Origin: Podarcis vaucheri
Taxonomy: Eukaryota
Assembly (NCBI GenBank): GCA_965113315.1
Contig: OZ220369.1
DNA length: 64,000 nucleotides
Reading direction: 5' to 3' (one strand)
A model generated the notes under the pieces. That model ran no database searches. It was not told where the DNA came from and saw nothing but the letters and a program-made list of their open reading frames with translations. Position 1 is the first letter of the stretch, and every line of letters starts with the position of its first letter. Made by a program: the position numbers and the translations under genes. Positions 227-64,000 of this stretch are shown piece by piece.

Positions 227-408
227 ATATGTTAACTGTGCCCGGAATGAGGAAGAGCAAAATCTTGTTGCCTTCCAGTATCATGGGAAAATCTACTACA
301 GAGCATGTAAAATAATCCTTATTCATTCTGAGCTTCTGGTTTGGTATGGAGAAGAATATGGAAAGGAGCTTGGCATCAAGTGGGGCTCTAGATGGAAATC
401 AAGAAAAG
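227..408 (+). CDS. PRDM9: PRDM9 copy A, third PR/SET exon
   Basis: ttcag|A TAT...AAA G|gtata. Encodes [60 protein letters not shown], matching the mammalian PRDM9 PR/SET C-terminal part. Confidence 0.96.
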
Positions 409-1908
409 GTATAATAATCATGCATTGTTTTAAATCTTCCCTAACACTGAAATCTGTTATTGCTTCTTTTGTTTGTCTTAGGCAGCATTCTCCTGGATAC
501 ATCTAATATATCTTCATATTTCTATGTGTTATATACAGTAAATCTAAAGGACTAGTTCATAGAACCATAGAATTGTAGAGCTAGAAGGGTGGTTGAGGTA
601 AGAGAAATGTAGGACAGCTGGGGGAAAGCTTTCATGTTGCAGAGAAATGCACAAGGATTAGGATCAATTTTGCATGGTGAATATGTGGGCTGAAAAGACT
701 GGTGCTGCGTTTTTGACATAGTGGTAGTGCTTGTATGACTTTTGAACATGACTCCAGTTCTTAAGTCTTCTCATATGTAGAGCATGGGAGTGGTGCCAGC
801 CTTGAGCAGGCTGGCACAAGTCATATTGCTGCCTGCTGCAGGAAAGTGAAGTAACAACACACCTGCCAGTAATATGAGACATAGTCCACCAGGATATTAT
901 TCTGTGCCTGTCTCTTTGAAAGGAATGGAGGCGTCATACAAATATTACTATACCTCTCCTATTTATTTCAGTGGGAACTTGTGCAGTACAACATCCCCGT
1001 GGATTGTCCCACATTTGTTAAATATGGCTTTCCCCCTCAGTCAAAATCCATCAGCTGGGAGGTTGTCACACCTTGGTTCATGGTAGACCCCCTCACATAG
1101 CATGCCAATATATTGTTGAACATCACCCCACTCTCTGAGCGGTGTGAAATTCCAGAGATTCTAGGAATGAGGGACATCAGAGTCTGTGGTGTCTTTAAGA
1201 TTTATTTATTTATTTATTTATACAAATATACAACCTGAGCCTGTGATGGAGGGACTCACAGAATCAACACCCCAAAATATATTGCTTCTTCCATAGTCAC
1301 AGCCTTTGATTCGAATAGAAATCAAGTATGTTTCTCACTTTCTGGCTTCTGCTTTGCTTCTAACCCAGGTGCCACACACAACTGGCTATTGTCCTTCTAA
1401 CTACCAGTCAGGTGAGAGGGGGCACCCATTTGTCCTCTGGCACAGAACAACTTGCTTTGTTATACTATTGACCATACTTAGGGCCATTAACTCGCCAAGG
1501 AATTTGCCTGGCTAGTTAAACAATGGAATTAGAAGAGACTCCAGCATCATACAGGCTGACACACACACACCCCGCCAAGGTCACAACAATACTACAGTTG
1601 TTGTAATATTAGGAAGAATTTCATCATATACAGTAGTTGTCTCTTGTGCAAATATCTAATTTCCTCTGTATGCAGGTGTTATCTTAAAAAATAAGAAATG
1701 CATTTGGCATAGAAGAAATTCTCTCTCAGAACTATTTTAATATAGTTAAAGCACCAAAATTTAGACTTTATTTGCATTCAATAGTATTGCAGTATTTTAA
1801 CACACCTCCAGATTTTGGGTCATTCCACGCCAAATTACCTGGTGCCATGTGCTTTCATGACTCAGATTTTCTTCAATTTTTTAAATGTGTAGATACTTAT
1901 GAGATAAC

Positions 1909-2142
1909 CAAATTAATTTTTAAAGATTTTTTGCTCCAAAATTGGGAGCAGGAGAATTTTTTGAAAATTTCGTTTTTCGCGCAATTTAGGCTTATGCAAT
2001 TTCTGCGTCAGTTTAGAAAAACCCCTCAAATTAATTTGTAAAGATTTTTTTCATCCAAAATTGTGCACAGGAGAATTTTTTGAAAATTTCAATTTCTGCG
2101 CGATTTAGGCTAATGCAATTTCTGCATCAGTTTAGAAAAAAA
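1909..2142. repeat. ~118-bp tandem duplication in the last PRDM9 intron (also in unit 2)
   Basis: caaattaattt...aaagattttt...caggagaattttttgaaaatttc...gtttagaaaaa starts at 1909 and again at 2027. Confidence 0.7.
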
Positions 2143-2897
2143 CTACTGTTTGTTTTTGTTTTTTCAACCAGTTGGGCTTATTTTGGTATCAAAATAAAGC
2201 TAAATGTGGTCTCTTTCGAAATAAGGTATAAAAATGGTATTAAGAAAAGGGTCACTGACTATTCAAAGTGAATTTTTGTCATTTTATTCCTGGTAGGTTC
2301 GATAAGCCATAGCGCGCAAACCACAACTAACACGTGTATCATCCTTTTGTTGTGGAATGGGGTAACTATGTACTTGTTATGTTTTAAAAATAAGGAGGGT
2401 GTTTTTTGTGGTTATAAAATAAATTGATTTTTAAGAATTTTTTTTACAAAAAAATATTACTTTTTTTGGACAGGTTTAAGGTTTCTTTGAGCCTGAAATA
2501 ACTCACACATTTGTGAGAATAGTTAAAATTAAGTTTAATATATTATTTAATAAAAACAAAATATATCTTAGAGCCCTTGTTCATTTTATTGTGTAAAACA
2601 CTTCTGCAATGACATGGTCAAAGCTATTTTGTTTCCCATACATGTAATATAGTCAATGATGCTGTTTTGACCACTGTATGCAATATGACCTTTCTGAATG
2701 CTGTGGCCAGTCTTGGTCTTCTTACTGCTGCTTGCTCCTTCAGGACAACCCTCTGTTTTGGCATGTGTCTTTTTCCTTGGCTCTCAGTGAGCTTGTTGGG
2801 TCCTGTAGTTTCCTAAATAATGTAGTCCCATATGCCCATTTGTCATGCATGGTTGAAAATAGCTACTAAAACTCAAATCTTGTTTGTTCTCAAATAG

Positions 2898-4216
2898 TAC
2901 ACAAGCAGAATTCACGTTTGATACAGGAGCGAGGTATCACCTGCCATCAGTGTCCCTGCTGCAAATTGGCTTTCACTTTCAAAGATTACCTTCACAGACA
3001 TATGAAATGGAGGCATTCAGGATATGGAATACAGCCTGAAGTACCTGAAAATGTCCTAGCAGAGAAATCTCTATTCAAAATCACAAATAGTGCTTCAAAC
3101 AGAACTATGCTGCAGCACCTAGTGCCAAGTTGTGTTTACAAAGACAAAGATGAGGAGACACTGTTTTTAAAAGATATAAACAAAGAGACACAGAGTAGAA
3201 CGCAGGTTTCTAGATGCAATGAAAGTGGGACAACTTTAAAGCAGCTGTCACACCCAGCCCAACAATTATGTATAGGAGAGAGACCATGTTCATTTAGAAA
3301 GTGTGGGAGAAGTTTCAGCTACTCATCAGTGCTAGTCACTCCCATGCAAACACACACAAGAGAGAAGCCATATTCATGTAGGGAGTGTGGGAAAAGCTTT
3401 AGCCAGTCAGGCGTCCTGACCAGGAACAAGCGAATGCACACAGGAGAGAAGCCATATTCATGTGGAGAGTGTGGGAAAAGCTTCAGCTGGTCAGGACACC
3501 TGGCCAGCCACAAGCGAACGCACACAGGAGAGAAGCCATATTCATGTGGAGAGTGTGGGAAAAGCTTCAGCTGGTCAGGACACCTGGCCAGCCACAAGCG
3601 AACGCACACAGGAGAGAAGCCATATTCATGTGGAGAGTGTGGGAAAAGCTTCAGCCGGTCAGGACACCTGGCTGTCCACAAGCGAACGCACACAGGAGAG
3701 AAGCCATATTCATGTGGAGAGTGTGGGAAAAGCTTCATCCAGTCAGGAGACCTGGCCAAGCACAAGCGAATGCACACAGGAGAGAAGCCATATTCATGTG
3801 GAGAGTGTGGGAAAAGCTTCAGCCAGTCAGGAGACCTGGCCAGGCACAAGCGAATGCACACAGGAGAGAAGCCATATTCATGTGAAGAATGTGGGGAAAG
3901 CTTCAGCCAGTCAAGAGACCTGGCCAGCCACAAGCGAATGCACACAGGAGAGAAGCCATATTCATGTGAAGAATGTGGGGAAAGCTTCAGCCAGTCAGGA
4001 AACCTGGCCAGACACAAGCGAACGCACACAGGAGAGAAGCCATATTCATGTGGAGAGTGTGGGAAAAGCTTCAGCCGGTCAGGACACCTGGCCAGACACA
4101 AGCGAATGCACACAGGAGAGAAGCCATATTCATGTGGAGAGTGTGGGGAAAGCTTTAGCCGGTCAGGACACCTGGCCAGACACAAGCGAATGCACACAGG
4201 AGAGAAGCCACCTTAG
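2898..4216 (+). CDS. PRDM9: PRDM9 copy A, final exon: post-SET zinc finger, spacer and 10 C2H2 repeats
   Basis: Acceptor aaatag| is phase-compatible with the previous exon. [22 protein letters not shown] post-SET finger, TGEKPY-linked array, TAG at 4214-4216. Confidence 0.95.
3371..4210 (+). repeat. 84-bp zinc-finger minisatellite, 10 units (copy A)
   Basis: Near-identical 84-bp units. Helix -1/+3/+6 residues: QVR (His->Asn), WHS, WHS, RHV, QDK, QDR, QDS, QNR, RHR, RHR. Confidence 0.97.
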
Positions 4217-6251
4217 TGTAACATAGTGGATAGAGCTACCAGTTCCAGTACAGAGTATGGTGCTGTATTTTGAATGTTTTTAATCATAAAGTAAGCAGCT
4301 CTGCATTTCTGCTCATCTAGCAGTTTTGGTGCATTTCGCCATCTGCTGTAATAAGCAGGGCTCTAATCATTTGCTGTCTACTCTGTAGGAAACTTCATCA
4401 AGTGACTTTTTCTAAAGCCAGCACCACTGCTCATACCACCTCATTGTTTTAGAGCTCTAAAGACACAATTTTGGATATATGACCCTAGAAGTGAGTTTTT
4501 GTGTGGCAAACCCTAGAAGTTTATTTGGTGAACTTTTTTTCACCCTTATGCTTTTTAATGCTCCACAATCTGATTTAAAATGAAAGAAGTGCCTATGTTT
4601 TAAATGCTGAAGTTTTCCCATAAGCATTTCTTCTTGAGGGCCAATGTGAAAAAGCATAGGGTGCTATACTACTTGTGGAGTTACCTGATGTAATTTATAA
4701 AGCTATATTTACATTATTTCCTGCTAGCATCTTTTTATGTTGTGCTGAAACTGTTTTCTGATGCTATAACTGATGAATCTTCACTGATCTTCACTTAAAG
4801 ATTATTTCCAAAATGGGCCAATGTTACAATGAGGTTCAGGAGCTCTGATTTGAAGAAAAAGATTCAACCCTGACTACTAAACTCATTTCCATCTAACAGT
4901 GAAATCCCAAGATTCCATAATTCAGTTGAACAATGCTTACAGCTCTTGGGCTTTATTTCAATGGTCAATCATATTCTGCCCATGTTATCTTAATAAATGG
5001 CTTCTTCAAAAGTGACTGCTGTTACTGTCATAAATTAAGAAATAGTTTTCAATGTAACTGTCATATACTTTTTACATTAATCTGAAACTCTGGTCCAAAT
5101 AACACACTGTATATAAACACATATTATGAAATGGGATGCCTGCTTCTTCTAGCCAAAGTAGTTTTGTGAGGGAAACAGTCAGAAATGGAAGCAGGAGGGG
5201 AGTAAGATGCTTAATTCGTTATTTAGCTTTTCTTTTCTTCCACAGCTTTCCCTCAAGCCACTCTCCTCCAGGGGTGCCTGTTAAACTTGCAAAATACATT
5301 ATTTGGAACCTTGTAAGGAGAAAAGTAGCTTCAGGAGGAGTTGGTTGGGAAATGCCATGCACATTTCTGTGCACAAGGATGAAATGCCTTCCTCTCCCCC
5401 CTCCCCCATTTCAGATTTCAACCACCAAAGCTTCTTTGCCTAAAACAAACAACCACATGGATTTGTATTACACGCTTTTGCATGCCAAGTATGTGTTAGC
5501 CTTGCAACTTCTCAAAACTCTTATATTTTTCCAAATAATATAGTTCCATCTGCAGACAAAAGTAGAGCAAAGTATCAGGACTGAATCCTACTTGTCACAG
5601 GATAGCTATGAATAGGATATCCTGTGGTGTTTTTTGTTGTAAGAGTTAGTAATGGCACTAGAAGAGCTGATGTGGCTTGAGACCCCAGTGCTGTGGAAGG
5701 GAGCATGGCTAACTGGTTAACCCTTCTCTCCATGCTATTTCCCTCTGAGAACTGCCTGCTTCCCTGCTGATGCTATTTATCTTCAAGGCAAACCCATACA
5801 TATACGGTGGTAATATCCGTATGTATTGCTCCACAAGGCAACTAGCTCTAGGGATGCAATTTGGTTTAGGACAAATGACATGGGGGAAGTGTTGAGCCCC
5901 CACTCACGGTGCAGTATCACAAACATTTACCCTTCCTGATCCTGAAGACAGCCACTCCATCCTAAACAGCTTTACCTTGGAAGTCTTATTGACTTTATTA
6001 GGCCTTCTAAGTAAATGAAATGAGGATCACAGGCTCTTTGTGTATGTTATGTGTAGTAAGGGCTGATTCATATCATTCTTTTAAGGTGACTGAGAGAGAT
6101 GCAATAGATATTGCATATTGATGTTCCATGCCATAATGATAACACTTGCATAGGTCGTTCATGCATAAAATGGACAGGGTGGAAAGCCTTCATGAATCCC
6201 CATCCCTTTGCAAGCATATCTTCACATGGTGACCTTATAGTACACCTAGAT

Positions 6252-6572
6252 CAGGGGTCAGCAACCTTTTTCAGCTGTGGGCCGGTCCACCTTCCCTCAG
6301 ACCATGTAGTGGGCCGGACTATATTTTTTGGGGAGATATGAACAAATTCCTATGCCCCACAAATAACTCAGAGATGCATTTTAAATAAAATCACACATTC
6401 TACTCATGTAAAAACACCAGGCAGGCCCTACAAATAACCCAGAGATGCATTTTAAATAAAAGGACACATTCTATTCATGTAAAAATACGCTGATTCCCGG
6501 ACCGTCCGCGGGCTGGATTAAGAAGGCGATTGGGCTGCATCTGGCCTGTGGACCTTAGGTTGCCTACCCCTG
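6252..6572. mobile_element. hAT-like non-autonomous DNA transposon (removed in unit 2 by a larger deletion)
   Basis: Termini caggggtcagcaacc...ggttgcctacccctg. Imperfect 8-bp TSD acctagat/ctctagat. Confidence 0.7.
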
Positions 6573-8697
6573 CTCTAGATGGTGAGTGCTGCTGAAGGGA
6601 GCTAACACTGCTTAAGGGTAGAGAGAACTGCTAAAAGGCCCTATAGAGTATTATCTTAACAGTCTGTGCCACCAACTCTGTTGCCTGCCCATGGTTGTGA
6701 ATTGCTCTGGTTTTGTAAGGATAATACAGACACTTTTTAGAATAATTTAAAAGACATACTGTGTTTCACCAGAAATGGTACCAGACAAAAAACAAATTGT
6801 TCCCAGGCACAGATGGTGCATTAAGGTTTAGGCTACAAGGCATATGGGTTGTAGGAAAGAGCACTGGCTGAAGTACTGTATATAAAACTATCCATCATGA
6901 AGATAGCCAATGCATGTTTCCTTGTGCAAAGCTGGCCAGCTGGCCACCTGTGGTGTGAAAATGTGTACTGTATTGCATCTGATCAGACAAGCATCAAGAC
7001 AGGCCTGACTTTCCTGTACTGCTCGGTATTACAAAAGCACTGATCCAAACTGACCCTGTTATCATGAGGTTAGGGTTAGAAATAAGTTGTTCTCCTAAGT
7101 GAATAATAGAATATATCACTTTGATGTTGTTTTGAATATAAAGCAAGTAGGACATTTTCAAAATAAATGAAACATGTTGTTTCAAAACAATCTCATTTCA
7201 TAATAGTGAAACATTTATTTTATTAACATCCCAGATGCCAAAACTTGAAAAAATAAGGAAATTTAGTCTGTCATTAAATCGAAATAGGATTACAAACCGT
7301 CTCCCATGCTAGGGCTTGGATCAAGAGTATTAATGGGGTCAACTACCCATTTCCCTTATCATTGCTTCGACTCACCCACCTTTGGCAATCTTCTGTAATG
7401 CACAACCAGAGCTTCGTATGTCATGGTAAGAAGAGAGGGTCAGACGCCTATTTAGGGAAATAACCAAACACTGTGAAATGTCTGGTTATTTTTTTCATTG
7501 TCACCATGAAAACCTAAAACTCATTGGTTCTTCTAAGAGAGAGATACTCAATATAGTGTCCTCCATATGTTTTTGGACTATAACTCCAATCAATCCAGCC
7601 AACATAGATAATAGTAGGGGATAATGGGAATCATAGTTCTAAACATTTGGAGAGTATCACATTGGTTAACCCTATTACTTTTAGCCCAAGTCTAGCTCTC
7701 TCCAGCTCTCCTTTGGTCTTTGAAGAAAGCAAGGGAGGTTCATAGTGCAATCTATCAAAAAAACCAAAACCCTACAATATTAACAATGTTACAACTTTTT
7801 CCTATACAAGAGTGGGAAAGCATACAAGTAGCAGATCAAAGATGAAGACAAATATAATATTGAAACAAAAGTTGCATAGGTTTTTCACCCATGATATGAT
7901 TTCAGCCTTTTCCTGGCTTCTACCAAAGCAAATATTGGATAAGCTCTCAGTTTTTTTCTCCTATCTTGTGATTGAGGCAGTCTATGTACTATTTCTTTCT
8001 TGTTCATGTGTGTCTTGAAGCATTGTCCAATCAGCACCATATACAGCTGGATTTTGCTGCAAACCTATAGCCCAATTTCCTTCAGCATTCAACAATGGGG
8101 GAAAAATATACATTTGAACTGAACACAATGAGCACGCTTCCAAATCAGCTGCACTATAAATAGGTCTCTCTTAAATCCCAATTTCAGAAGGGAAAGTAGG
8201 AGCAGGCACAAGTTCTAAATGAATTAATCCTATAAGCTTCTCAGTTGTGCACCATTTGGTGAATATCACTGACGTGTTCTTTACATCTTGGAACAAATTT
8301 TCCTAGAAAAGGGGAGGGAAGCATCTCTTCCCAACAAGACCAAGAATGGAAAAGTGACTAGGAAGATGTCAAGTGAAAATAAAGTTAGTACTTGTCAGAA
8401 TATTTTGTCTGGAAAACGAAAATGCCAGGAAACTTGTGTTGTTTACCCTCCTGCCAAATCTTTCACAAAGCCAGATCTTTCACAAAGAGGAATCAATAAT
8501 TTCTTCTCAGCCTTCTTATTGTAAACCTGACATAGTTATACAAGTGTGAGTATCCTGGAGAGAGGAGAATATAGAATCCTTCCACCCCTGCCCTCAATTC
8601 TCCTCAGCAGGATGAAGTGAGGAAGAATATTCAGGATTCAAAAGGGCTGTTTATACTATGTGCCTGGAAACTGAATGCAAAGTGAAGTCCTTTTCTA

Positions 8698-8820
8698 TCA
8701 CGGTTTCTCTGGCTTCTCCAGCTGCAGATCAATCACTTTCACGTTCCCTATGTCCTGGTAGGTGGCCTGCAGCCCCCGTGAAATGTCCTCGTACATGGAA
8801 CAGTCATCCAGATTCAGTCC
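8698..8820 (-). pseudogene. CD79A: CD79A (Ig-alpha) last coding exon with ITAM, partial gene copy in unit 1
   Basis: Minus strand ttcctag|[40 protein letters not shown], matching human [25 protein letters not shown]...LEKP. Confidence 0.93.
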
Positions 8821-8909
8821 CTAGGAAGGGAAAACCAAAAAAGGTCAATCTCTGAAAGATAAGTCTATAAGTATGAATACTGATATAAAATCACAAAAAG
8901 GGGTTCACA

Positions 8910-9238
8910 GCGGGTGGCGCTGTGGGTTAAACCACGGAGCCTAGGACTTGCTAATCAGATGTTCGGCGGTTCGAATCCCCACAATGGAGTGGGCGCCCGT
9001 TGCTCAGTCCCTGATCCTGCCAGTTCGTGAGCACGTCAAAGTGCAAGTAGATAAATAGGTGGGGAGGTAAAAGGCGTTTCCGTGCGCTGCTCTGGTTCGC
9101 CAGAAGTGGCTTAGTCATTCTGGCCACATGACCCAGAAGCTGTACGCCCGCTCCCTCGGCCAATAAAGTGAGATGAGCGCCATAACCCCAGAGTCGGCCA
9201 CGACTGGACCTAATGGTCAGGAGCCCCTTTACCTTTAC
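8910..9238 (+). mobile_element. Sauria SINE (unit 1 only)
   Basis: tRNA-like head gggtggcgctgtgggttaaacc...ggttcgaatcc and (ACCTTT)n tail. Absent at the paralogous site ~39250. Confidence 0.85.
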
Positions 9239-9475
9239 TATTATTCTGAAGATGCATTGAGTTTTAGGGTGCATTTAAAAACAATGGACATTACAAATTT
9301 TGGTGCATTCATTTCAAAGTGTCTGCTTTGTGGGATGTGACATCACTGTAGCAGTCAAATACAACATTTCCAGTTTGCCCAGAGTGGACACATGGGGTGT
9401 TGCTCCAGCCAGGAGGACTTTCTGTCACTAGGTATAACTTGATACAACCCTTTGGCTGCAACCCTAAACAAGTTT

Positions 9476-9627
9476 AAAGGGACCCCTGACCATTAGGTCC
9501 AGTTGTGGCAGACTCTGGAGTTGCGGCGCTCATCTCGCTTTATTGGCCGAGGGAGCCAGTGTACAGCTTCCGGGACGTGGCCAGCATGACTAATCCGCTT
9601 CTGGCAAACCAGAGCAGTGCATGGAAA
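9476..9627 (-). mobile_element. Sauria SINE 3' fragment
   Basis: Reverse complement of the 3' half of the SINEs at 8910 and 12923. Confidence 0.75.
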
Positions 9628-10507
9628 CTTCACACACACTCACACACTACATACACCACATTTCTGTTATAAAATTCATAGAAAAATCAACCATACATTG
9701 GATTTGCACTGTTCCATTTTTATTTTACTCCATATGACAAGGACTATCAAAGGGGGGTGACCAGGGGTGTGGCTTGGTTCTGGTCAGCCATAATCCCTTC
9801 ACCATCCCAGCACATCCACAGGAGCCCTGCCCAGTTGCTATGCCAACCCTGATGATCCCAGACAGAAGACAATCAAGATCACAAAGAACTTGCATATGGG
9901 AGTGGATTCAGCATGGACTGAAACAAAGGACAATGATCAGATCTTCCCTCTGGGGCAGGAAACTGCCAACTCCTCTTTGTCTCCTGGAAGTGACTCATGG
10001 GAGGGGGAAAGGAGGAACCAGCCAGGTGACAGGACACTCAGGTTACCACCACAACTCCTCCCTCAACCCCTCCTTTCTGTAATGTATGCATGATGTTTCT
10101 GGGGGTGGGCTTGACCTAGAGGAGGGGAATTTCAAAAGTTTTTATAAGACCTTGCACACTATTTTTCTTTGTCTTTCCTCTCTTTTGCAAGTGAGGGGAA
10201 CACCCTGTTGCAACAGTTCAATAAAGGCCAAGCCTACAGGCTGCTGTTTTGCTCCAAGTTATCCTGGTTGGTGTCTTTGTTTTGTCCAAGGGAGCCCTCG
10301 GATTTTTCCGATAACAAGAATACTGGCTGGGCTTCCTATTTCCAGTATCATATGAATACACCATGGTGTCTATCTCCTTCAGCTTTGGAATTTTCCCACA
10401 TTCTGCTGCACAGAAGCATGGGCGTAGCCAGGATTTTTCTTAACATGTTTATTTATGGGGGGGGCAGTGCCCCCCCACGCCCATGTACAGAAGTCTCCCA
10501 GAATTAC

Positions 10508-10576
10508 CACATATATGTTCTCCTCTTCATAAGCCTTCTTCTTGGCTTGTAAAAGGCGCTCGTTTTCCCATCTCTT
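10508..10576 (-). pseudogene. CD79A: CD79A cytoplasmic exon, unit 1
   Basis: 69-nt exon cag|KRWENERLLQAKKKAYEEENIYV|gtaatt; human counterpart [23 protein letters not shown]. Confidence 0.9.
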
Positions 10577-11677
10577 CTGCAAAAAGAGAGAGAGAGAGAG
10601 AGAGAGAGAAGAGAAGAGAAGGAAAACACTATGAAAACAAATGTGGTACATCGGGTAGGCATCACTGGGCCTGCCAAAGCCCACAGCCCAGTAGTGAGCC
10701 CAATGCCATTCTCTGGAGCTGCTCCTCAGTGATGCTGTCTGTTCATCTGCCCTCTAAGTGTGCAAACATAAGAATGAGATAATGGAGACATAGTCTCTAT
10801 GTGCTTTTCCTTCAAGTGCCTGGGCTTCCTGGGCTCCACCAAATTGGAGATGGTTCTTTGCTTAGCTGCATCAGTTTTCGGTGCATTTTACATGCTTTTA
10901 GGCCACAAACTCAGGCCACACACACACACACCACACATTTAAAGCACTCTTCTGTCACTTTAACAGCCATGGCTTCTCCCAAACACTCATGGGAACTGTA
11001 GTTAAGTGTGCCAAGAGTTGTTAGGAGACCCCTCACAGAGCTGCAATTCCCAGCACCCTTAACAAACTACAGTTCCCAGGATTCTTTGAGGGAAGCCATG
11101 ACTGTTAAAATGGTACAATAATGGCTTTATTTTTTTTAAGTATGTTGTGGATATAACCCTAAACCAGTTTAACTGTCCTTCCCCCATTCACAGTTGGGAT
11201 TCTCTGAGGAAGTGAGAGGTGAGTTATAGCGAATTGTTGATCACCACTTCTTGCTAAATGACAATTACCAGTATTGAGAGGCTCATAATCTTGGTAGCCA
11301 TTTACTGCTTAGATTTCACAGGTTCTCAATACATTGGTCACAGTTAATGGTAACTAAAGAGTTGATCACAGAAGAGCATAACAATTAAATCAATTTTAGT
11401 TTAAGGGCCATTTCATACAAACAAAAACTGGTCCTCAGCTGATCAGCAGAAGATAAAACTGAACACATGTTACGACATTCTGTCTGGCCATATGGAAAAG
11501 TAGTTGCATGAACTTTCTGTCATGCGTGATTGGGGTGCATAGGTGAAACCCTACATCCTGGGTAGCTGTGTGTGACAGAGAAATAAAGAGGCCATTTCAC
11601 CAAATTCCTAGTTGTACTTCACACAGCATTTGTAGATGGACAATTCTAGCTTATGTGAACTAGTCTTCAGTTAGCTG

Positions 11678-12153
11678 TGTAGCTAAAACAACAAGTTTCA
11701 GATAAGTACCAGGGGCCAGGACATAGTCTAAAGGTGCATGATGTCATGGAAATGACGGAGAACAAAGGGGAAGAGGAGAGACCAGTAGAGGAAGGGGGGC
11801 AGGAAGTGGCAATGGAGGAAAGGAGGGAAACTCAGGAAGAGGGAAGGCTCTCTGATGTTGGAGCAGAGCCTCAACACTGCACAGGAAGCTCTGGCACGGA
11901 GGGCGAGGCAGTGCCGGTTCCATCTGCTCAGGAAAGGAGAGTGTTAAAGAGGAGGAGGCAGAGACATCAAATGAGAATGCCTCGCCTCTTCTGCTGGAAA
12001 AGGAGCAGATGTAAGTCACTCCGAGAATCTGACCCAGAGGATTCGGATGCATGATTATGTGTGCTGCTTGTACATATGTAAAATAAAGGATGTATATATG
12101 TATCTCTGAGTGAGCAGAGGCATTTCTTGCGGAGAGCATTCATAAGCCATCAC
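11678..12153. mobile_element. Possible solo LTR or other interspersed repeat (also ~41880-42356)
   Basis: TG...CA ends, internal AATAAA and a purine-rich pseudo-ORF. No clear TSD. Confidence 0.3.
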
Positions 12154-12625
12154 ACATGACACAGCCATCTTGTTCTTGTCAGTGCTTGGATGGGAACCTA
12201 CCTGAGACCCTTCTGTGTGCTTCCTTAAGTTCCATGACAGTGGAGAAGTGGGATATTAATGTGATAAACACATCACAAACATCTTTTACTAAAGGAACAC
12301 AGCAAACATCATTTTGTATTTCAGAGCCATCCAATTATTGTTCTCAGACAATACCCTTGACCCATGTGATTCCAGTGAAGTGCCATTTGGGGGAAAACTC
12401 TTGTATTAGGCAATTATCTAGATGTTGTGCCTGTTGCTGGTGTACATGCTGATAAAAGGACAGTTTGCCCCTTTGGGGTAACAATCTACTCTTTAAAAAT
12501 AGGGGAAAAAAGCAGAACAAGATCTGGTGACTGGAAACTGTAGGCTGACAGATTCATTATGCACCATGCTCTCCCTGTCTGTCACCATGCGTACAAAGAA
12601 TAGTCAGAGGGAAATAACAGCTCAC

Positions 12626-12744
12626 CCTGAAGAGCAAAAAAAGACCAGGACCAATGGCACAGATGAGTAGCAGGAAACCCTCAGCTGTGATGATCTTATT
12701 TTTGACGCCTTCTGTCATGTTCAGGAAAGAGGCTGGTCGAGGCC
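12626..12744 (-). pseudogene. CD79A: CD79A transmembrane exon, unit 1
   Basis: 119-nt exon ctag|[40 protein letters not shown]|gtgag; human counterpart [37 protein letters not shown]. Confidence 0.92.
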
Positions 12745-12922
12745 CTAGAAGACAGCAAGCAGGAGAGTGTTTGATCCAGAAACCCCACAGCATCCCTAAC
12801 TATTTTATCACTCTCTTGCAATCCCAGGTAAAACTACAAGTATACAAAGAAAAATATGCACCCCAGGTATTATTGCATTAAGTGTCTTTGTTTGTATTGA
12901 TTTACACTGCCTGCCCTGCCAC

Positions 12923-13270
12923 GGGTGGCGCTGTGGGTTAAACCACAGAGCCTAGGGCTTGCCAATCAGAAGGTCAGCGGTTCGAATCCCCATGACGGGG
13001 TGAGTTCCCATTGCTCGGTCCCTGCTCCTGCCAACCTAGCAGTTCGAAAGCACTAAGTGCAAGTAGATAAATAGGTACCATTCCGGTGGGAAGGTAAATG
13101 GTGTTTCTGTGCGCTGCTCTGGTTCACCAGTAGTGGCTTCGTCATGCTGGCCACATGACCCAGAAGCTGCATGCCGGCTCCCTTGGCCAATAAAGCAAGA
13201 TGAGTGCCACAACCCCAGAGTTGTCTGCGACTGGACCTAATGGTCAGGGGTCCCTTACCTTTACCTTACT
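12923..13270 (+). mobile_element. Sauria SINE with 16-bp TSD
   Basis: Full head-to-tail SINE flanked by ctgcctgccctgccac at 12907-12922 and 13271-13286. Confidence 0.88.
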
Positions 13271-14498
13271 CTGCCTGCCCTGCCACCTCTGCCACTGGCA
13301 CTGATTTTGGGCAACTACTCACTATGAAATTGGCACCGATGCCAGCGCTGCTTCTCCACAATGGTTCAGTTTGTACATTGCAGTGCCAAACCTACTCTCT
13401 GGATTTCTCCTTAAGATAAAATTTTTGGTGGCGGCTTCTGTGCCCCTGCACACATTCTGCAGAAAACCTTTCCCCATTCTGAAGCTTCAGGTTAAATGTT
13501 GTGTTGTGCGGGCTGACAATACGTCATTTCACAGGCCAGTGGCAATTTCAGAAAGGAAATGAAAGTTCTTATTGACAAAACAAGGTTGTGGAGCATATTT
13601 ACAAAAACTCTGATCAAGATACTGTCTGGCAGAAGTATGAATTCTGCTCTGACTTATAACTCACTGGGTGTTTGGGAGCAAAGCTAGTTGTAACACCTAG
13701 TTTACTTCTCAGTGAAACCTACCTAACAAAGTTGTTGTAATGATAAAATGTGGTTTAGGCTCCTTGGAAGAAGCCAGGGAGATAAACAATATCAATAGTC
13801 TCATAACCCAGAACTCACCTGTATCAGTCCCTATTCCCTCTGAGCTTCTCCCTGGCACTACTCTAGCTACACTCCCATCTCTCTGGAAGAACCATTAGCT
13901 TTAAGAATTCAATGCAGGAATCCTGTATAGATATTACCAGCCTGGCTCAGGTCCCTAGAAAATTCCAGGTCCAAAAATCGAAGCTGCTTCACTATAACCC
14001 ATGAGTACAGCGACTCAGAGCACACCCACTGAAATTAATGGGGATGACTAACTTAGGTCCATTAATTTCGGTGGAGCTACAATGGCACCCAGTGGCCTTT
14101 TGAGATAATGCTAAAGGTTTCCATCTCACCCTTCTGGAAATATGTGCCTTTAAGAGTTGTCTGATGGAGAGGAATTTCAGCTGGTCCAGATGGTCACTTT
14201 GTGATGCCGCAGGCTTGAGCAGCCTTGCACCTGCTGAAGCTTTTCCTTCTACCTAACTATTAAAGACAGAAGAGCCATGTCTTTTTATTGGCCTCCTATC
14301 GAAGAGTGCTTCAGTCTTTACAACTCCTTGCTCCTGTTCTGAAAAAAGGCGGGGAAAGCAAAGCACATGGGTCGTAGCTTCAATCTAGGCTTGTCATACG
14401 TCAGGAAAATTCCTGACATGTCCTGGTTTCCAGGTGTAAAAATGGCGTCGGATGTATGGCAACGCAATGGAAAAAGCAGCACAACCTTTTTTTTTTCC

Positions 14499-16110
14499 TC
14501 AAACACTTCCGATTTTGGGAGGAATGAAATGTTTTAAGGAATGGAAAAAGGAGCTAGCCAGATTTGTCTGGAATGGCAATAAGCTGAGAATCAAACACCA
14601 GGTATTAATAGATAAAAGAGAAAGAGGTGGATTTGGATTACCGGATTTAGAATTATACCATGCCGCAGCTGGCTAGTTTGGTTAAAGAAATGGATTACAC
14701 TAAAAGATACAAATGTATTAGATCTTGAGGGGCACGACAACTGGTTTGGGTGGCATGCCTATCTGATATATGAAAAGGTGAAAGTACACAAAGTTTCTTG
14801 GGCCATGAAGTAAGAAGATCACTCTATAAAATGTGGAGTAAATACAGAGGAATTTTGGAACCCAATATATCTTTGTGGACGTCACCAGTAGAAGCGATAG
14901 CAGTCAAAAGGAAAAACATGAAGGGAGACTGGCCCAATTACAGGATGTTATTAGAACCAGACAAAGAAATGCCAATCCTAAAAAAATATGAGGATATTAA
15001 ATATCACCTGTCTGGTTGGCTACAGTAATTCCAACTAAACCAAAAACTGAGCACAGATAAAAGAGAAGGTCTTGCCAAAGAAACTTCCGCCTTTGAAAAA
15101 GAGTTAATATATAACAAGGGAAAATATATATCAAGAATGTATGAACATCTTTTAGAGTGGGAAGTGAAAGAGGAGCAGGTTAAAACATCTGTGATAAAAT
15201 GGGCGCAGGACTTTGGCTACAATATTAATATGGAACAATGGGGAATGCTATGGCAGCAAGACATTAAATTTACATCATGCTATAATTTGAGGGAAAATAC
15301 CATGAAGATGCTTTATCGATGGCACCACACCCCGGCAAAACTCGCCAAAATGTATAAGGGAAGTTCACCAATATGTTGGCGTTGTAAAAAGGAAATAGGA
15401 TCGTACTATTATATGTTGTGGACTTGTATGGTTATAAGCGAGTTTTGCAATAAAATATATGATGAATTTAAGAAATTATTTAAACTTATTTTTTTTAAAA
15501 AGACCAGAGATTTTCCTTCTAGGAATACTGCCAATAGAAATAAAGCAAAATACAAGACCACTGCTCATGTATTCAATTACAGCTGCAAAAATACTGATAG
15601 CCAGAAGTTGGAAATGTGAAACAACAACTACAATAATAGATTGGCAATCACTCATGCTAGAGTACTTTCAATTAGCAAAGCTGACCGCAAAAGTCAGAGG
15701 AGCCCCAAATCAAAAAAAAAAATCAGAGAATAGAGACTATTTAAAGAATATATAAGATTATATTGTAATAATGATGTTATCCTAGCAGAACTGAATGATA
15801 CTTGTATATAATAAACAAATGGAATAAATATACTAGATGAATATACAGGAAGTTGTAAAACAAACTGTGCGATAAAATTAAGACAATAGAAAAAGTACAA
15901 TGAGAATGATTGGAAGTTTCTTTCAGAAGGCTTTATTAGAAAAGACAGGATGTTATAACCAACATTCATTTATTATTGTTAGCTCTTTTTTGCTTTTTAT
16001 TTTTATTTCCTTCATCTTTCTATTATACTTTTTGTTTAATTTTGATGTAACTATTTGTAATATATACGTAAGATGATATTTTAAATCAATAAAGATGAAT
16101 TTTAAAAAAA
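14499..16110 (+). mobile_element. 5'-truncated, degenerate L1-clade LINE (ORF2 3' part, 3' UTR, A tail)
   Basis: Fragments QTLPI...RFVWNGNKLRIK...ERGGFGLPDLELY and C-terminal CWRC...MLWTC knuckle. Frameshifts present. AATAAA followed by an A tail. Confidence 0.85.
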
Positions 16111-16458: not shown

Positions 16459-16460
<2 letters not shown>

Positions 16461-48184: not shown

Positions 48185-48234
<50 letters not shown>

Positions 48235-50094: not shown

Positions 50095-50218
50095 GCTGAA
50101 GATACTTTTAAAGGGCTGGCCATCTACTTCCCTAAAGAGCAATGGGCTGAAATGGGAGAATGGGAAAAAATTCGTTATAAGAATATGAAAGAGAACTATG
50201 AGTTTATGACTCAATTAG
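50095..50218 (+). CDS. PRDM9: PRDM9 copy C KRAB exon
   Basis: Intact; V->A relative to copy B. Confidence 0.95.
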
Positions 50219-51106: not shown

Positions 51107-51211
51107 GTCTTCCTACACCTAAACCAACATTTATGTATCATGCACGGCAACCTCCCAAAACTACAAATGAGTCCTCTGAGTCTGATGAGGAATGGACACC
51201 AAAATCTATAG
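51107..51211 (+). CDS. PRDM9: PRDM9 copy C exon 3
   Basis: Intact, identical to copy B. Confidence 0.93.
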   Translation, partial: VFLHLNQHLCIMHGNLPKLQMSPLSLMRNGHQNL

Positions 51212-52747: not shown

Positions 52748-52821
52748 TAAAATCTTTTAGGACACCGTGTAACCTGAATAGCTGGAAAGAGGAAAAGAAA
52801 AAAAAGTACCCTCTTGATCAA
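52748..52821 (+). CDS. PRDM9: PRDM9 copy C exon 4
   Basis: Intact, identical to copy B. Confidence 0.75.
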
Positions 52822-53931: not shown

Positions 53932-53972
<41 letters not shown>

Positions 53973-54078: not shown

Positions 54079-54196
54079 AATAAGCAAATAAACACTATGG
54101 GACTTACTTCCAAAGACCAAGAACATATAAAGAAAACTGACAAAAATACATGTGCAGATGTTCATACTACAGACATTGCAGCAGAATCAAAGACTG
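54079..54196 (+). CDS. PRDM9: PRDM9 copy C exon 5
   Basis: Intact, identical to copy B. Confidence 0.75.
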
Positions 54197-55335: not shown

Positions 55336-55476
55336 ATATTGAGAAGAAAGCTTTGTCGGGGAAAGCAAAGAATAAGAAAAGAGATCAGGAGAAAGAAGTT
55401 AGTACATACAGTTTGCGGAAGAGGGAGAGAAAAACATATATGGAAATAAATGAGCCAAATGATGATGATTACTTGT
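55336..55476 (+). CDS. PRDM9: PRDM9 copy C exon 6 (SSXRD)
   Basis: Intact; T->M (acg>atg). Confidence 0.93.
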
Positions 55477-57301: not shown

Positions 57302-57573
57302 TTTGTGAATACTGCCTGCTATTCTTTATTGATGAATGTTCAGTTCATGGTTCTCCAGTTTTCATCAAGGATACAGCAGTAGAAATAGGACTGGAAGAGA
57401 GGGCCACCCTCACTTTACCTCCAGGTTTGAGAATTGGCCCATCAGGTATCCCCAAAGCTGGCTTTGGAGTCTGGAATGAAGGAGAAATTCTGCCTCCAGG
57501 AATTCATTTTGGGCCCTATGAAGGGAAAATCACAGAGGAAGAAGAAGCAGCCAACAGTGGTTATTCTTGGCTG
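57302..57573 (+). CDS. PRDM9: PRDM9 copy C exon 7 (zinc knuckle and PR/SET)
   Basis: Same protein sequence as copy B. Confidence 0.97.
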
Positions 57574-58409
57574 GTATGATTTACTCACAGCACTTTTATT
57601 TTAAAAAAATTCCATGTAGAGTACCACCTTGCTGAATGAACAAACCCCACCCTCCAGGCAGAGTCAAATGACTTTGTTCAGTGCTCCTTCCCTTTACAAT
57701 GTCAAGCTTGTGAGTACAGGAAGTAGAACCTTCTTCCTGATGGAGCCAAAGTGTTGGAACTCCCTCCTTAGAGAAGTCTTGTTCCTTCATCCTTTTAAGT
57801 TTTATGAAAGTGGTCAAGAAAGTTTCTGCCTTTTCTGTTTAATAATCCTCTGTTTTTAAGTATGATTTGATGGAATATCAATTATGAATAAACTTCCTTG
57901 AATGTTGTAGAAGTGGGCTAAAAATTGTATGTTAAAATGCATTTAATGAAAGAAAATTTGAAACAATAACTCAGAATGGTGAACTTTTTCATTTTAGTGT
58001 ATCAGAACTCAAATGTTAATGAATACAAGCAATCCTATTGCTGTCTGTCACCACCCAATGTTGAAACACAATTTGAATTGCAGCAAGATCATAGATGGTT
58101 CAATGCAGAATTGTCAGGGCCTTGCAGGACGTAGACAAATGTGCACTGGGGTAGCGGGGCTGGACTCGGGAGAGGGGATCTGTTGTGGCAACCTGTACCA
58201 GCCAGGGGGCAAGAGTCAGACAGGGGAAGCTTCAGAGCTGGAGGTTGGAGCACAGGATGTGTTGGAGGCAGAGGGGAAAGAGGCAGGTCAGGCAAGGGAA
58301 GAGTTGGGTTCTTCCCCATACTCTCCTGCACCACTGTCTCCTAAAACCAGGAGGGGATTGAAGAAGGAAGAACAGAGACAGCTTCCATGCAGGTGTAGCC
58401 ACTGTGAGA

Positions 58410-58664
58410 GCCAGTGTGGTGTAGTGGTTAAGAGCGGTAGTCTCGTAATCTGGGGAACCGGGTTCGCGTCTCCGCTCCTCCACATGCAGCTGCTGGGTGA
58501 CCTTGGGCCAGTCACACTTCTCTGAAGTCTCTCAGCCCCACTCACCTCACAGAGTGTTTGTTGTGGGGGAGGAAGGGAAAGGAGAATGTTAGCCGCTTTG
58601 AGACTCCTGAAGGGGAGTGAAAGGCGGGATATCAAATCCAAACTCTTCTTCTTCTTCTTCTTCT
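58410..58664 (+). mobile_element. Squam3-like SINE, unit 2
   Basis: Paralog of 27428 with a shorter (CTT)n tail. Confidence 0.85.
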
Positions 58665-59548
58665 GTGGCCCATCAATGAGAGGTACATAAACGAGTGGAG
58701 GGGGTGGCTCCCCTTGTTGCTGCAACTGCTCCACAGAGCACAGGGCAGAATTAGGCAGTGTGGTTATTTGGAGCTATAGAACTACTTTCTAGATGAAGGC
58801 AAGTCCCTTCGACTCTATTCTGCCCCTGCCCTGTTCTGCCCCCTTGCTGCACCAAAAACGGCATGTGTATGCTGCTGCATGCAACTTGAATGTGCACAAG
58901 TGGGCAGTTGCTTGTACTGTAAGTGTTTGCTTGAGACAATAATGAATTAACTATCTGCTGTGTGCATCCTGGGGAGTATCTTTAACAAAAATGATTATAA
59001 CTTTAAAAGCAGAAAGTACCCATCTTGACTATGGAGTCTAGCCAGATAACAGACACGCGCAGATAATATACCTATGCAATGGTGAGACATATACCTTAAG
59101 CAAAAAAGCCAGGGAAGTTCTTGAAATGTATTTCTCACCCAAACCAATATTTTATTGCTTCTGCTTATTTGTTTATTCAAAGTGAATTTTCTTATTAAAA
59201 TAAAAAGTACCGTATAGTTCACCACTTAGACTATTCTAAATAATTTAAACACAAAGTTTTAAAACTCCAGGAAAACTCCTTGAAAGAAAATGATGAGAAT
59301 CCAGAAAACAAGCCTGCCAGGAAACAGAGCTACAGAATAGGTGGGGAGGGTGGCTTCATAATTAGGCAAAAGGTGAAAAGGGTTCTTAGTAGTTGCAATA
59401 TGTGGGAAGAGGAAGATGCAGGATATTACCATGGAGGGGGTCTTTGTGCCTGTTGGGGTTGCACAAAAGAAGGGGAAGACATGGAGGTGAAGGTGAAAAC
59501 GGGTGCAAAGCAGGGCTGCAGAAACGAGAGTTGTGCTTTCGAACATAG

Positions 59549-62401
59549 TTTAATGGACTTCAATGTCTGTACACTAATGCGCAAAGCATGGGAAATAAAC
59601 AAGATGAGCTTGAGCTCTTAGTACAGCAAACTAAATATGACATAATAGGCATCACTGAAACCTGGTGGGATAAGTCCCACGATTGGAATGTAATAATGGG
59701 GGTATACAATCTATTTCAGAGAAACAGACCAGACAAGAAAGGAGGAGGAGTAGCGTTATATGTCAAGGATGTGTATACCTGTGAAGAGATCCAAGATCTA
59801 GATCCTCAAAGCCAAAGTGAGAGCATTTGGGTCAAAATTAAGGGAGAGAAGAATAACAGAGACCTCATTGTGGGAGTTTACTATAGATCCCCAAGCCAAA
59901 CAGAGGACATAGATGATGCCTTCCTGGAACAGATGGCCAAGCATGCAAAAGGAAGGGAGATAGTAGTAATGGGGGACTTCAATTACCCGGATATTTGTTG
60001 GACGTCAAACTCAGCCAAGAGCATAAGGTCAAACAGATTCCTCACTGGCCTTGCAGACAACTTCATTGTCCAGAAAGTGGGAGAAGCAACAAGAGGAACA
60101 GCCATTTTAGATCTGGTCCTAACCAATGTTGATGACCTGGTTAGTGGGGTAGAAGTGGAAGGATCATTAGGCGCGAGTGATCATGCTCTTCTGAAGTTTA
60201 CTATACAGCGGAAAGGAGCAGCCAAGCATACTAGGACTCAATTTCTTGACTTTAAGAAAGCCGACTTCATAAAACTTAGGGAAGTGCTGGGTGAGATCCC
60301 ATGGACAACAATACTAAAAGGAAAGGAAGTTCATGATGGCTGGGAGTTTGTTAAGAGGGAGATAGTAAAAGCACAACGTCAGGCAATACCAATGAGACGG
60401 AAACATGGAAGGTGCCTAAAGAAGCCAGGGTGGCTATCTAAAGAACTTTTAACTGATTTAAGATTAAAAAAGGATGTGTACAAAAAATGGAAAAGGTGGG
60501 AAACCACCAAAGAGGAATTCAAACAAATAGCCAGCACGTGTAGACACAAAGTCAGAAAAGCTAAAGCACAGAATGAACTCAGGCTTGCTAGAGAGGTTAA
60601 AAGCAACAAAAAAGGCTTTTATGGGTATGTTCGTAGCAAAAGGAAGAACAAAGAAACAGTGGGGTCACTCAGAGGAGAAGATGGTGAAATGCAAACAGGG
60701 GACACAGAAAGGGCTGAACTCCTCAATGCCTTCTTTGCCTCAGTCTTCTCCGATAAATAAAACAATGCCCGACCTGAAGAATTTGGAGCAAATGATTCAG
60801 CAAAGGAAACACAGCCCAGAATAACTAAGGAGATAGTACAAGAATATTTGGCTAGTTTAGATGTATTCAAGTCTCCAGGGCCAGATGAACTGCATCCAAG
60901 AGTATTAAAAGAACTGGCAGATGTGATCTCAGAACCACTGGCAGTCATCTTTGAGAATTCCAGGAGAACAGGCGAAGTCCCGGCAGACTGGAGGAGGGCA
61001 AATGTTGTCCCTATTTTCAAAAAGGGGAAAAGAGAGGACCCAAATAATTACCGCCCAGTCAGTCTGACATCAATACCAGGGAAGATTCTGGAGCAGATCA
61101 TTAAGCAAACAGTCTGTGAGCACCTAGAAAGGAATACTGTGATCACCAATAGTCAGCATGGATTTCTGAAAAATAAGTCATGTCAGACTAACCTGATCTC
61201 GTTTTTTGACAGAATTACAAGCCTGGTAGATGAAGGGAACGCAGTGGATGTAGCCTACCTTGATTTCAGCAAGGCATCTGACAAGGTGCCCCATGATATT
61301 CTTGTAAAGAAGCTGGTAAAATGCAGTCTTGACTATGCTACCACTCAGTGGATTTGTAACTGGCTGACTGACCGAACCCAAAGGGTGCTCATCAATGGTT
61401 CCTCTTCATCCTGGAGAAGAGTGACTAGTGGGGTGCCACAGGGTTCTGTCTTGGGCCCGGTCTTATTCAACATCTTTATCAACGACTTGGATGATGGACT
61501 CAAGGGCATCCTGATCAAATTTGCAGATGACACCAAACTGGGAGGGGTGGCTAACACCCCAGAGGACAGGATCACACTTCAAAACGACCTTGACAGATTA
61601 GAGAACTGGGCCAAAACAAACAAGATGAATTTTAACAGGGAGAAATGTAAAGTATTGCACTTGGGCAAAAAAAATGAGAGGCACAAATACAAGATGGGTG
61701 ACACCTGGCTTGAGAGCAGTACATGTGAAAAGGATCTAGGAGTCTTGGTTGACCACAAACTTGACATGAGCCAACAGTGTGACGCGGCAGCTAAAAAAGC
61801 CAATGCAATTCTGGGCTGCATCAATAGGAGTATAGCATCTAGATCAAGGGAAGTAATAGTGCCACTGTATTCTGCTCTGGTCAGACCACACCTGGAGTAC
61901 TGTGTCCAGTTCTGGGCACCACAATTCAAGAAGGACATTGACAAACTGGAACGTGTCCAGAGGAGGGCAACCAAAATGGTCAAAGGCCTGGAAACGATGC
62001 CTTATGAGGAACGGCTAAGGGAGCTGGGCATGTTTAGCCTGGAGAAGAGGAGGTTAAGGGGTGATATGATAGCCATGTACAAATATATAAAAGGATGTCA
62101 CATAGAGGAGGGAGAAAGGTTGTTTTCTGCTGCTCCGGAGAAGTGGACACGGAGCAATGGATCCAAACTACAAGAAAGAAGATTCCACCTAAACATTAGG
62201 AAGAACTTCCTGACAGTAAGAGCCGTTCGACAGTGGAATTTGCTGCCAAGGAGTGTGGTGGAGTCTCCTACTTTGGAGGTCTTTAAGCAGAGGCTTGACA
62301 ACCATATGTCAGGAGTGCTCTGATGGTGTTTCCTGCTTGGCAGGGGGTTGGACTCGATGGCCCTTGTGGTCTCTTCCAACTCTATGATTCTGTGATTCTG
62401 T
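59549..62401 (+). mobile_element. Young CR1 LINE (near-complete ORF2: APE and RT), unit-2-specific
   Basis: ORFs 59588-60760 (ITETWW, GDFN, SDH endonuclease) and 60848-62323 (FADD RT) are in the same frame, split by one TAA. (ATTCTRTG)n tail. 8-bp TSD gaacatag. Empty site at ~29293. Confidence 0.95.
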
Positions 62402-62593: not shown

Positions 62594-62661
62594 ATTACTA
62601 GAGGGCAAAACTGCTATGTTTACATTGATGGAAAGGATGAAACTAATTCCAACTGGATGAG
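62594..62661 (+). CDS. PRDM9: PRDM9 copy C exon 8
   Basis: Intact; one synonymous change. Confidence 0.96.
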
Positions 62662-62797
62662 GTAAACATCCTTGATCAAACTAAATGAAGAGAGACTTTT
62701 AAAACAAGGGTCTTCATACACCTGGAAAGGCCAATAGAACAGAATAACTTAAATGTCATTCTGGGTGCCTACAGGTTACCCATCCGTACTCTTAATA

Positions 62798-63014
62798 CAG
62801 TGGTACCTCGGGTTACATACGCTTCAGGTTACAGACTCCGCTAACCCAGAAATAGTGCCTCGGGTTAAGAATTTTGCTTCAGGATGAGAACACAAATTGG
62901 GCAGCGGCAGCGCTGCAGGACCCATTAGTTAAAGTGGTGCTTCAGGTTAAGAACAGTTTCAGGTTAAGAACAGACCTCCAGAACGAATTAAGTACGTAAC
63001 CAGAGGTACCACTG
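62798..63014. mobile_element. Tc1/mariner MITE, unit 2
   Basis: Paralog of 29689-29888 with an extra 17-bp internal repeat. Confidence 0.85.
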
Positions 63015-63845
63015 TATCTTTTAACTGTTGGGAGTAAAGCACAACATTTGCAATAACCTGCTTGAACTGTGGTGAGGAATAGACAGAAATGCAACCTGTT
63101 CTTCCTTCTTCACTGATTCCTTCTCTTTTAGTAAATGCTTGTCAGTAAAGTAGATCACTTCCTTTCAGGCCTTAATTCTTTTCTGCTTCTCCAAGTAGTC
63201 AGTATGAGTTAGCTTGTGCTAGTGGCTGCATCTTGGCTACATGTAAAATCTATACATAGAATGGTTCCTCCTCCAAGACTAATAAATGTTAAGTTTTCTT
63301 TATCCTTTCAACAGCAGTCTTACCAGGGTATTTTTTCTGCATACTGCTTTGCAAATTGTGCACTATTTACCAAAGTTCAGTAGTGCCAGTACTAGAGAGA
63401 GAAGTGGCACCTTTCAAAGGTAAAAAGAATATCTTGGTTTGGAAAGAGAGTGGTGGGCCACTAAACTGCTTAGTAGGATCAGTCAAAGCTATGGGTTCAT
63501 CATTCCTAGTAGAGCAAATGCCTGGTAGTCTGCATAAGTCTTGCTTCTGAAATGAATGGGAGGAGCAACCCAGACAAATATATTCTTCTACCACCGTAAA
63601 AAAAAGAAAGTGAAGTTACCACAGGTAAGAAGACCAAAGTTTATTTTACAAAATTTTGTTGTGTGTTGTAACCTCCAGTGTATAATATGCCCAGTGTTCA
63701 ACAAATTTAAAATATTTCAGCTGTACATTTCATTACCTGAATAATAGAAGAAAGTAATGCAATTGTTATGCTTCATAGTACTTCTCTAATTTCCAGCTTC
63801 CCTGACTGAGTACTTTTAGTTACCCTCTTAACAATGAACTTTCAG

Positions 63846-64000
63846 ATATGTTAACTGTGCCCGGAATGAGGAAGAGCAAAATCTTGTTGCCTTCCAGTAT
63901 CATGGGAAAATCTACTACAGAGCATGTAAAATAATCCTTATTCATTCTGAGCTTCTGGTTTGGTATGGAGAAGAATATGGAAAGGAGCTTGGCATCAAGT
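63846..64000 (+). CDS. PRDM9: PRDM9 copy C exon 9 (cut by window end)
   Basis: [18 protein letters not shown]...[13 protein letters not shown]. Confidence 0.95.

Follow-up and report, generated by a model that had tools for sequence, protein, structure and literature searches.

The DNA analysed here is a 64,000-base stretch of one strand of the Podarcis vaucheri genome (contig OZ220369.1 of assembly GCA_965113315.1), which we call the window and within which all coordinates are counted, and it is occupied by copies of PRDM9 placed one behind the other. PRDM9 is the textbook example of a single fast-evolving gene that sets the sites of meiotic recombination and destroys its own targets. The window is gap-free (no N), and comparison with itself by blastn resolved it into head-to-tail units, 96–98% identical, whose periods are 30,493 and 33,126 bases: two full repeat units and 381 bases of a third. 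Unit 1 (1–30493, + strand) starts within one PRDM9 gene, here copy A, and ends within the next, copy B; it is followed by unit 2 (30494–63619, +; 33,126 bases) and by the first 381 bases of the third unit (63620–64000, +). Positions 1–4210 are 98.05% identical to 30494–34697 and positions 1–381 are 99.5% identical to 63620–64000, with intervening colinear blocks of 92–99% identity that extend to 30874. The units thus have the same orientation, a regular period and colinear content, the pattern by which a tandem segmental duplication is recognised.

Exon models were obtained by aligning three PRDM9 proteins from the database (P0001, P0006 and P0007) to the window and checking the splice sites; Pfam and PDB searches were run exon by exon, and the spliced protein was used for the frame check and for alignment. 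Copy B has 10 coding exons on the + strand, GT-AG at every intron, consistent phases and an open frame of 1,012 residues. Exon 1 (17202–17696; donor AAG/GTGAGG) encodes an N-terminal extension of 165 residues that aligns with the N-termini of both P0006 and P0007; a comparable extension is present in PRDM9 of Pogona and Hemicordylus. The KRAB domain lies in exon 2 (18333–18456; Pfam KRAB 25 bits, cut-off 20.4) and SSXRD in exon 6 (23888–24028; Pfam SSXRD 30.8 bits, cut-off 23), with exon 3 (19359–19463; tblastn match, GT-AG), exon 4 (21046–21119; 100% match to residues 242–266 of P0007, GT-AG) and exon 5 (22631–22748; protein mapping and splice-site check) between them. The zinc knuckle and the start of the PR/SET domain, including the GPYEG motif, are encoded by exon 7 (26319–26590; Pfam PR domain 41.8 bits), the middle of PR/SET by exon 8 (29485–29552; 23.2 bits, splice sites) and its end by exon 9 (30720–30901; 76.8 bits), and the three exons jointly cover positions 2–122/123 of the PR domain profile. 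Exon 10 (33385–34844) contains the post-SET finger, a spacer and a C2H2 array found by Pfam, with 11 good fingers and a truncated twelfth. The gene model of P0001 was ruled out as the true structure, since it passes over exons 4–6 and would require a donor other than GT at the end of exon 1, whereas the 10-exon model is backed by P0006, P0007, Pogona and Hemicordylus. The isoform models P0001–P0003, which share the exon 1–2 junction without a GT donor in the window and, being devoid of exons 4–6, are also devoid of SSXRD, are probably annotation artefacts or minor isoforms.

The best solved relatives of exon 7 are the PR/SET domains of human and mouse PRDM9 (6nm4, 4ijd, 4c1q; E ~1e-40), and PRDM11 is the next family (E 8e-18). 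The motifs GPYEG, IYYRA and VWYG, which carry the equivalents of human Y276, Y341 and Y357, are kept wherever the exon in question can be seen (all three in copies B and C, the last two in copy A). Both the three catalytic tyrosines and the domain order, KRAB, SSXRD, zinc knuckle, PR/SET, post-SET finger and C2H2 minisatellite, are those of vertebrate PRDM9 as found in human, mouse, Pogona vitticeps and Hemicordylus capensis, and the ten coding exons equal the “10 expected exons” of salmonid Prdm9 (PMC11703093). When the sequence preceding the fingers in the large finger open reading frame (ORF) was searched against the database, one near-identical protein, P0001, came back, and its KRAB–SET part in turn retrieved P0006 and P0007. 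The nearest named proteins in the SET region are PRDM9 of Hemicordylus capensis (88%), Phrynocephalus forsythii (86%), Pogona vitticeps (85%) and Salvator merianae (81%); after these squamate proteins came PRDM9 and PRDM7 of turtles and mammals.

Of copy A the window contains exon 9 (227–408, +), the end of PR/SET with IYYRA and VWYG, which is preceded by AG, followed by GT and open in frame, and exon 10 (2898–4216, +), which encodes the post-SET finger, a spacer and ten repeats, nine of them good C2H2 fingers, and is open to a TAG stop. The preliminary description of this DNA took position 227, the first base of this exon 9, as its starting point. Copy C, likewise on the + strand, is visible from exon 1 (48976–49470; gapless against copy B and open) to exon 9 (63846–64000), which is cut by the window end. 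Its exons 3 (51107–51211), 4 (52748–52821), 5 (54079–54196) and 7 (57302–57573) are identical to those of copy B, exon 2 with KRAB (50095–50218) differs from it at two of 124 bases and exon 6 with SSXRD (55336–55476) at one of 141, and exons 8 (62594–62661) and 9 were placed by alignment to copy B. Over all 1,552 bases of its exons 1–9, copy C shows zero gaps and zero stops relative to copy B and keeps all splice dinucleotides. Frameshifts, internal stops and splice-site losses were found in no visible exon of copies A, B and C, and by its open frames every visible copy is predicted to be able to encode a complete KRAB–SSXRD–PR/SET–zinc-finger protein.

Much of what the preliminary description had read from the letters therefore stands. 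Its three head-to-tail copies at 30–33 kb spacing reappear in the self-comparison with periods of 30,493 and 33,126 bases; the full domain set that it placed in one open GT-AG frame of copy B corresponds to the 10 exons and 1,012 residues that pass the Pfam cut-offs; and the catalytic tyrosines that it considered retained are there wherever their exons can be seen. The visible exons of copies A and C, which it called intact, do have open frames, those of copy C without an indel or a broken splice site, and the origin that it described as squamate-like is supported because the closest named matches are lizard PRDM9 (85–88% to Hemicordylus capensis, Phrynocephalus forsythii and Pogona vitticeps). 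Its further idea, that several functional paralogs at one locus may form a “hotspot-specifier array” which enlarges the target repertoire and cushions hotspot erosion, goes beyond this structural part and stays a proposal.

Copies A and B have different zinc-finger arrays, and it is mainly the DNA-contact residues that set these apart. At positions −1, 3 and 6 the fingers of copy A read WHS, WHS, RHV, QDK, QDR, QDS, QNR, RHR and RHR, and those of copy B QDS, RHR, RHS, WHR, WDV, QHR, QDR, CNV, QNR, QDS and QNI. Across the 21 repeats compared, most codons are identical including the third base, whereas positions −1, 3 and 6 each take four or five residues. Copies A and B diverge by 0.68% over positions 1–3250 but by 5.6% within the finger array. 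The share of diversity that falls on positions −1, 2, 3 and 6, a statistic taken from the method as given in Baker et al, 2017 (PMC5519329), is 0.525 in copy A (9 fingers) and 0.476 in copy B (11 fingers); in the part of Table 1 of that paper used for comparison, complete PRDM9 orthologs score 0.35–1.0 and PRDM9-beta about 0.19. Since diversity is concentrated at the DNA-contact residues, arrays A and B bear the mark of a working PRDM9. Such an array, KRAB, SSXRD and a PR/SET domain with the three tyrosines are among the features by which Baker et al, 2017 and Cavassim et al, 2022 recognise a complete PRDM9 ortholog, and copy B shows all of them.

Each unit also carries part of a neighbouring gene. 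The 3′ part of CD79A, comprising the transmembrane and cytoplasmic/ITAM exons, lies on the − strand at 8701–12799 in unit 1, where the last exon (8701–8820) matches 7xq8_A, the B-cell receptor alpha chain (E = 4.6e-15), and the other exons were recognised by eye. In unit 2 it lies at 39068–43000 (−; upper bound approximate) in colinear blocks. These exons stand tail-to-tail with PRDM9 in both units, and a pattern search, the only search made for them, revealed no immunoglobulin-like or leader exon upstream of the fragment (12800–17250). The same truncated CD79A in every unit is the signature expected of a tandem segmental duplication with its breakpoint inside CD79A. The last CD79A exon is invariant between the units (39068–39187 is identical to 8701–8820 at 120/120 bases) despite the 2.5–4% divergence of its surroundings.

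The greater length of unit 2 is due mainly to two insertions of long interspersed nuclear elements (LINEs) that unit 1 lacks. One spans approximately 44181–46371 (−) and contains a reverse-transcriptase ORF of 611 residues (44542–46377), at a place where unit 1 is uninterrupted (~14593–14609). The other, a CR1-like insertion at approximately 59552–62401 (+), is matched by uninterrupted sequence at ~29293–29304; its element at 59588–62323 (+) has ORFs of 390 and 491 residues, which are the endonuclease and reverse-transcriptase parts. With their long ORFs still open, both look like young insertions. Unit 1 in turn has private segments at 8886–10316, 12694–13353 and 28155–28843, and, besides the LINEs, indels of 0.7–1.4 kb separate the units. 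Upstream of PRDM9 both units conserve a 160-residue ORF (15137–15619 and 46916–47398, +) that resembles a piece of a transposon. Both also contain a trinucleotide run (16323–16761 and 48077–48535), translated in ORFs as poly-Tyr or poly-Leu, some 0.7 kb before exon 1, and intron 7 has a poly-A/G run of unequal length in the two units (27305–27790 and 58288–58734).

These structural differences bear on the question of whether the repeat is genuine or a single-copy locus whose alleles or mis-joined reads have been recorded as a tandem repeat. Such an assembly artefact would fit two observations. The DNA contig sets of eight close relatives contain 55–80% of the words sampled from the window, the best sets only 78–80%, and the closely related database proteins lie on three large contigs, one per contig. 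The window itself, however, is gap-free, and within the 381 bases shared by all units each of copies A, B and C has private bases, and private sites set the third unit apart from A as well as from B. Two haplotypes could not yield three copies that all differ from one another. Whole LINE insertions, the other indels of 0.7–1.4 kb and different finger arrays separate the units, the same truncated neighbour recurs in each of them, and a divergence of about 1% together with large indels should be resolvable by accurate long reads. We therefore regard an artefact as improbable, and three or more head-to-tail PRDM9 genes as very likely a real array.

The P-numbered relatives were also considered as extra members of the array and rejected as such: they are spread over three large contigs, of 85.0, 92.0 and 93.6 Mb, and each is farther from copies B and C than B is from C. 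Copies B and C differ at 10 of 517 residues, whereas the differences amount to 14–17 for P0123, 19 for P0007 and 20 for P0006. These proteins may be orthologs from close relatives. The C-terminal ~25 residues of P0123 follow the +1 frame of the finger repeat, so that the final finger of its gene must contain either a frameshift or a sequence error.

The units have not diverged evenly. Mismatches between them amount to 0.7–1.5% over the gene body and to 2.5–4% in the 3′ flank and CD79A region; with gaps counted, the 3′ flank (4371–12693 versus 34989–42913) is 92–96% identical and the gene body 98–99%, so that the flank is three to four times more diverged. This suggests that the units are mosaic, or that homogenisation is confined to the gene. 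We infer that the array may be older than its gene bodies look, the genes having been homogenised by conversion or unequal crossing-over.

Given an array, the central question is how many of its copies work. We lean, though not strongly, towards a segmental-duplication array of which more than one copy is expressed in meiosis, with the effect of widening the set of hotspot motifs; that two or more copies are working is, from the sequence, about an even bet. Besides the intact visible exons and the contact-residue diversity of both arrays, selection on the coding sequence would speak for this reading. Outside exons, copies B and C differ at 121 of 10,916 bases (~1.1%), whereas exons 2–9 differ at four of 1,057 (Poisson P of four or fewer ~0.01 against the non-exonic rate), and no indel separates the two in 1,552 coding bases where ~2.7 would be expected from the non-coding rate.

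Several observations weigh against it. Gene conversion could mimic the constraint seen in exons 2–9, and exon 1 behaves differently from them, since copies B and C differ there at 16 of 495 bases with nine replacement codons, which is above the background divergence. All three non-synonymous base changes in exons 2–9, which affect two codons, are private to copy B: an Ala>Val replacement in KRAB and a Met>Thr replacement in SSXRD, at which copy C, the P-numbered relatives, Pogona and Hemicordylus agree against B. In the array of the same copy, a CGA>TGA change at 34842–34844 truncates repeat twelve and removes its last zinc-binding histidine, nine codons before the position of the copy A stop, and together with the private replacements this terminal stop hints at relaxed constraint on copy B. 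The first array repeat of copy A carries His>Asn at a zinc ligand. These lesions, neither of which the preliminary description mentions, leave 11 good fingers in copy B and nine in copy A. Intact frames are in any case weak evidence of function because copies B and C are only ~1.1% apart; estimated from the B/C rates, the chance that a neutrally evolving copy still has all its visible exons intact is ~15%. Two small sequencing runs guessed to be RNA contain ~10% of the sampled words, near the exon share of the query, and among the listed runs containing the stretch none is recorded as RNA. Finally, one related protein per contig means that a multi-copy annotation in the relatives is not evident.

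The same observations could be accommodated by a real array with a single working specifier, inside or outside the window. The other copies would then be young duplicates, kept intact by recency or by gene conversion and on their way to decay like the salmonid paralogs or primate PRDM7, which has lost fingers and function. The ~15% chance of an open neutral copy at 1.1% divergence, the premature stop and unique KRAB and SSXRD replacements of copy B and the broken first finger of copy A all fit such decay. Comparative data point the same way: a single full-length alpha-1 copy is present in 11 of 12 salmonid species (PMC11703093), and full-length cnidarian duplicates are short-lived, with usually one persisting (10.64898/2026.09.07.749791). 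The salmonid authors, too, consider that duplication may be favoured only transiently, via dosage (PMC11703093). What a lone specifier explains less well is that the visible exons of all three copies are free of frameshifts, internal stops and splice-site losses, that exons 2–9 diverge less than introns between B and C, that both arrays have retained the contact-residue pattern and that the 2.5–4% divergence of the 3′ flank suggests the array to be older than one would judge from the gene bodies. On this evidence we consider a single working copy a serious but rather unlikely explanation.

The extra copies might instead have been repurposed, for example for ordinary KRAB-zinc-finger or PRDM-type regulation, and not take part in hotspot choice. 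Teleosts (PMC11703093) and cnidarians (10.64898/2026.09.07.749791) do have truncated PRDM9 paralogs that are presumed to serve other roles. The copies described here are untruncated, with KRAB, SSXRD and catalytic tyrosines all retained, and show the rapid contact-residue turnover that is typical of hotspot-specifying PRDM9, which makes such a change of role very improbable.

To our knowledge, there are few vertebrate cases with several complete, seemingly working copies of PRDM9, namely cattle and three salmonid species. The genes of the window are, judged by their predicted products, plainly PRDM9, and they would extend an already known kind of multi-copy state, in an unusually clean form, to a new lineage. 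Complete PRDM9 is found in lizards, snakes and turtles according to the survey results in Baker et al, 2017 (PMC5519329); unlike the known squamate genes, PRDM9 is present here in at least three full-length tandem copies, and literature searches on squamate PRDM9 duplication found no report of more than one copy. A vertebrate parallel is provided by the ruminants. As the cattle section of Baker et al, 2017 (PMC5519329) has it, cattle possess six PRDM9 orthologs, of which two are rapidly evolving and tied to recombination phenotypes, so that the preliminary description overstated its premise that PRDM9 is usually single-copy. For the ruminant expansion, unequal crossing-over has been proposed as the mechanism in PMC5519329 and 10.64898/2026.09.07.749791. 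Like the present array, the ruminant paralogs are an expansion specific to one lineage, with a rapidly evolving finger array in more than one of the copies; in comparison with the cattle loci as published descriptions give them, the host here is a squamate and the copies are adjacent, ~99% alike in the gene body and, where visible, all complete.

In salmonids, paralogs are common and include a tandem segmental duplication, with most duplicates truncated or pseudogenised (PMC11703093). Salmonid Prdm9-alpha and primate PRDM7 are, as here, duplicates of a full-length PRDM9, but no decay comparable to that of the salmonid paralogs and PRDM7 is seen here beyond the two end-finger lesions. Theory and mouse data suggest that extra PRDM9 dosage can be favoured, and models predict that it can offset target erosion while duplicates are expected to be short-lived (PMC11703093). 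Outside vertebrates, cnidarians have several recent full-length Prdm9 paralogs at the species level, a pattern said to be unseen elsewhere (bioRxiv 10.64898/2026.09.07.749791). These paralogs belong to a different phylum; like the lizard copies they are recent, full-length and endowed with molecular marks of function, and some of them lie on one scaffold.

For the lizard array, events at the locus may be pictured as follows. Each unit of ~30–33 kb contributes one full-length PRDM9 and a truncated piece of the neighbouring CD79A. The array would have arisen, and would continue to be reshaped, by unequal crossing-over between units, and exchange between them would keep the gene bodies (0.7–1.5% mismatches) more alike than the 3′ flank (2.5–4%). 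More than one copy would probably be expressed in meiotic cells, and each protein would bind its own set of motifs and mark it with H3K4me3 and H3K36me3, a situation comparable to that of the two alleles in a PRDM9 heterozygote. Higher PRDM9 dosage and a wider set of hotspot motifs would be the result. Going further, one may tentatively imagine, although we rather doubt it, that full-length paralogs are co-expressed from a single lizard locus of variable copy number, so that a small family of specifiers sets the hotspots while unequal crossing-over tunes dosage and swaps finger arrays as motifs erode.

The history of PRDM9 in squamates gives these alternatives their interest. The gene has been lost in the anole and fence-lizard clade (Cavassim et al, 2022; PMC8892340), and in the corn snake it is engaged in a “tug-of-war” with promoter-like sites (preprint 10.1101/2023.07.11.548536); beside tug-of-war and loss, a gain in copy number in a lizard would add a third outcome within one order. 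Should only one copy work, the locus would simply be a young segmental duplication. If several paralogs are co-expressed, they would be a vertebrate counterpart of the cnidarian multi-copy state. A squamate with at least three adjacent complete copies that have different arrays would offer a natural test of how PRDM9 copies share the job, of dosage against erosion and of crossing-over and conversion at the locus.

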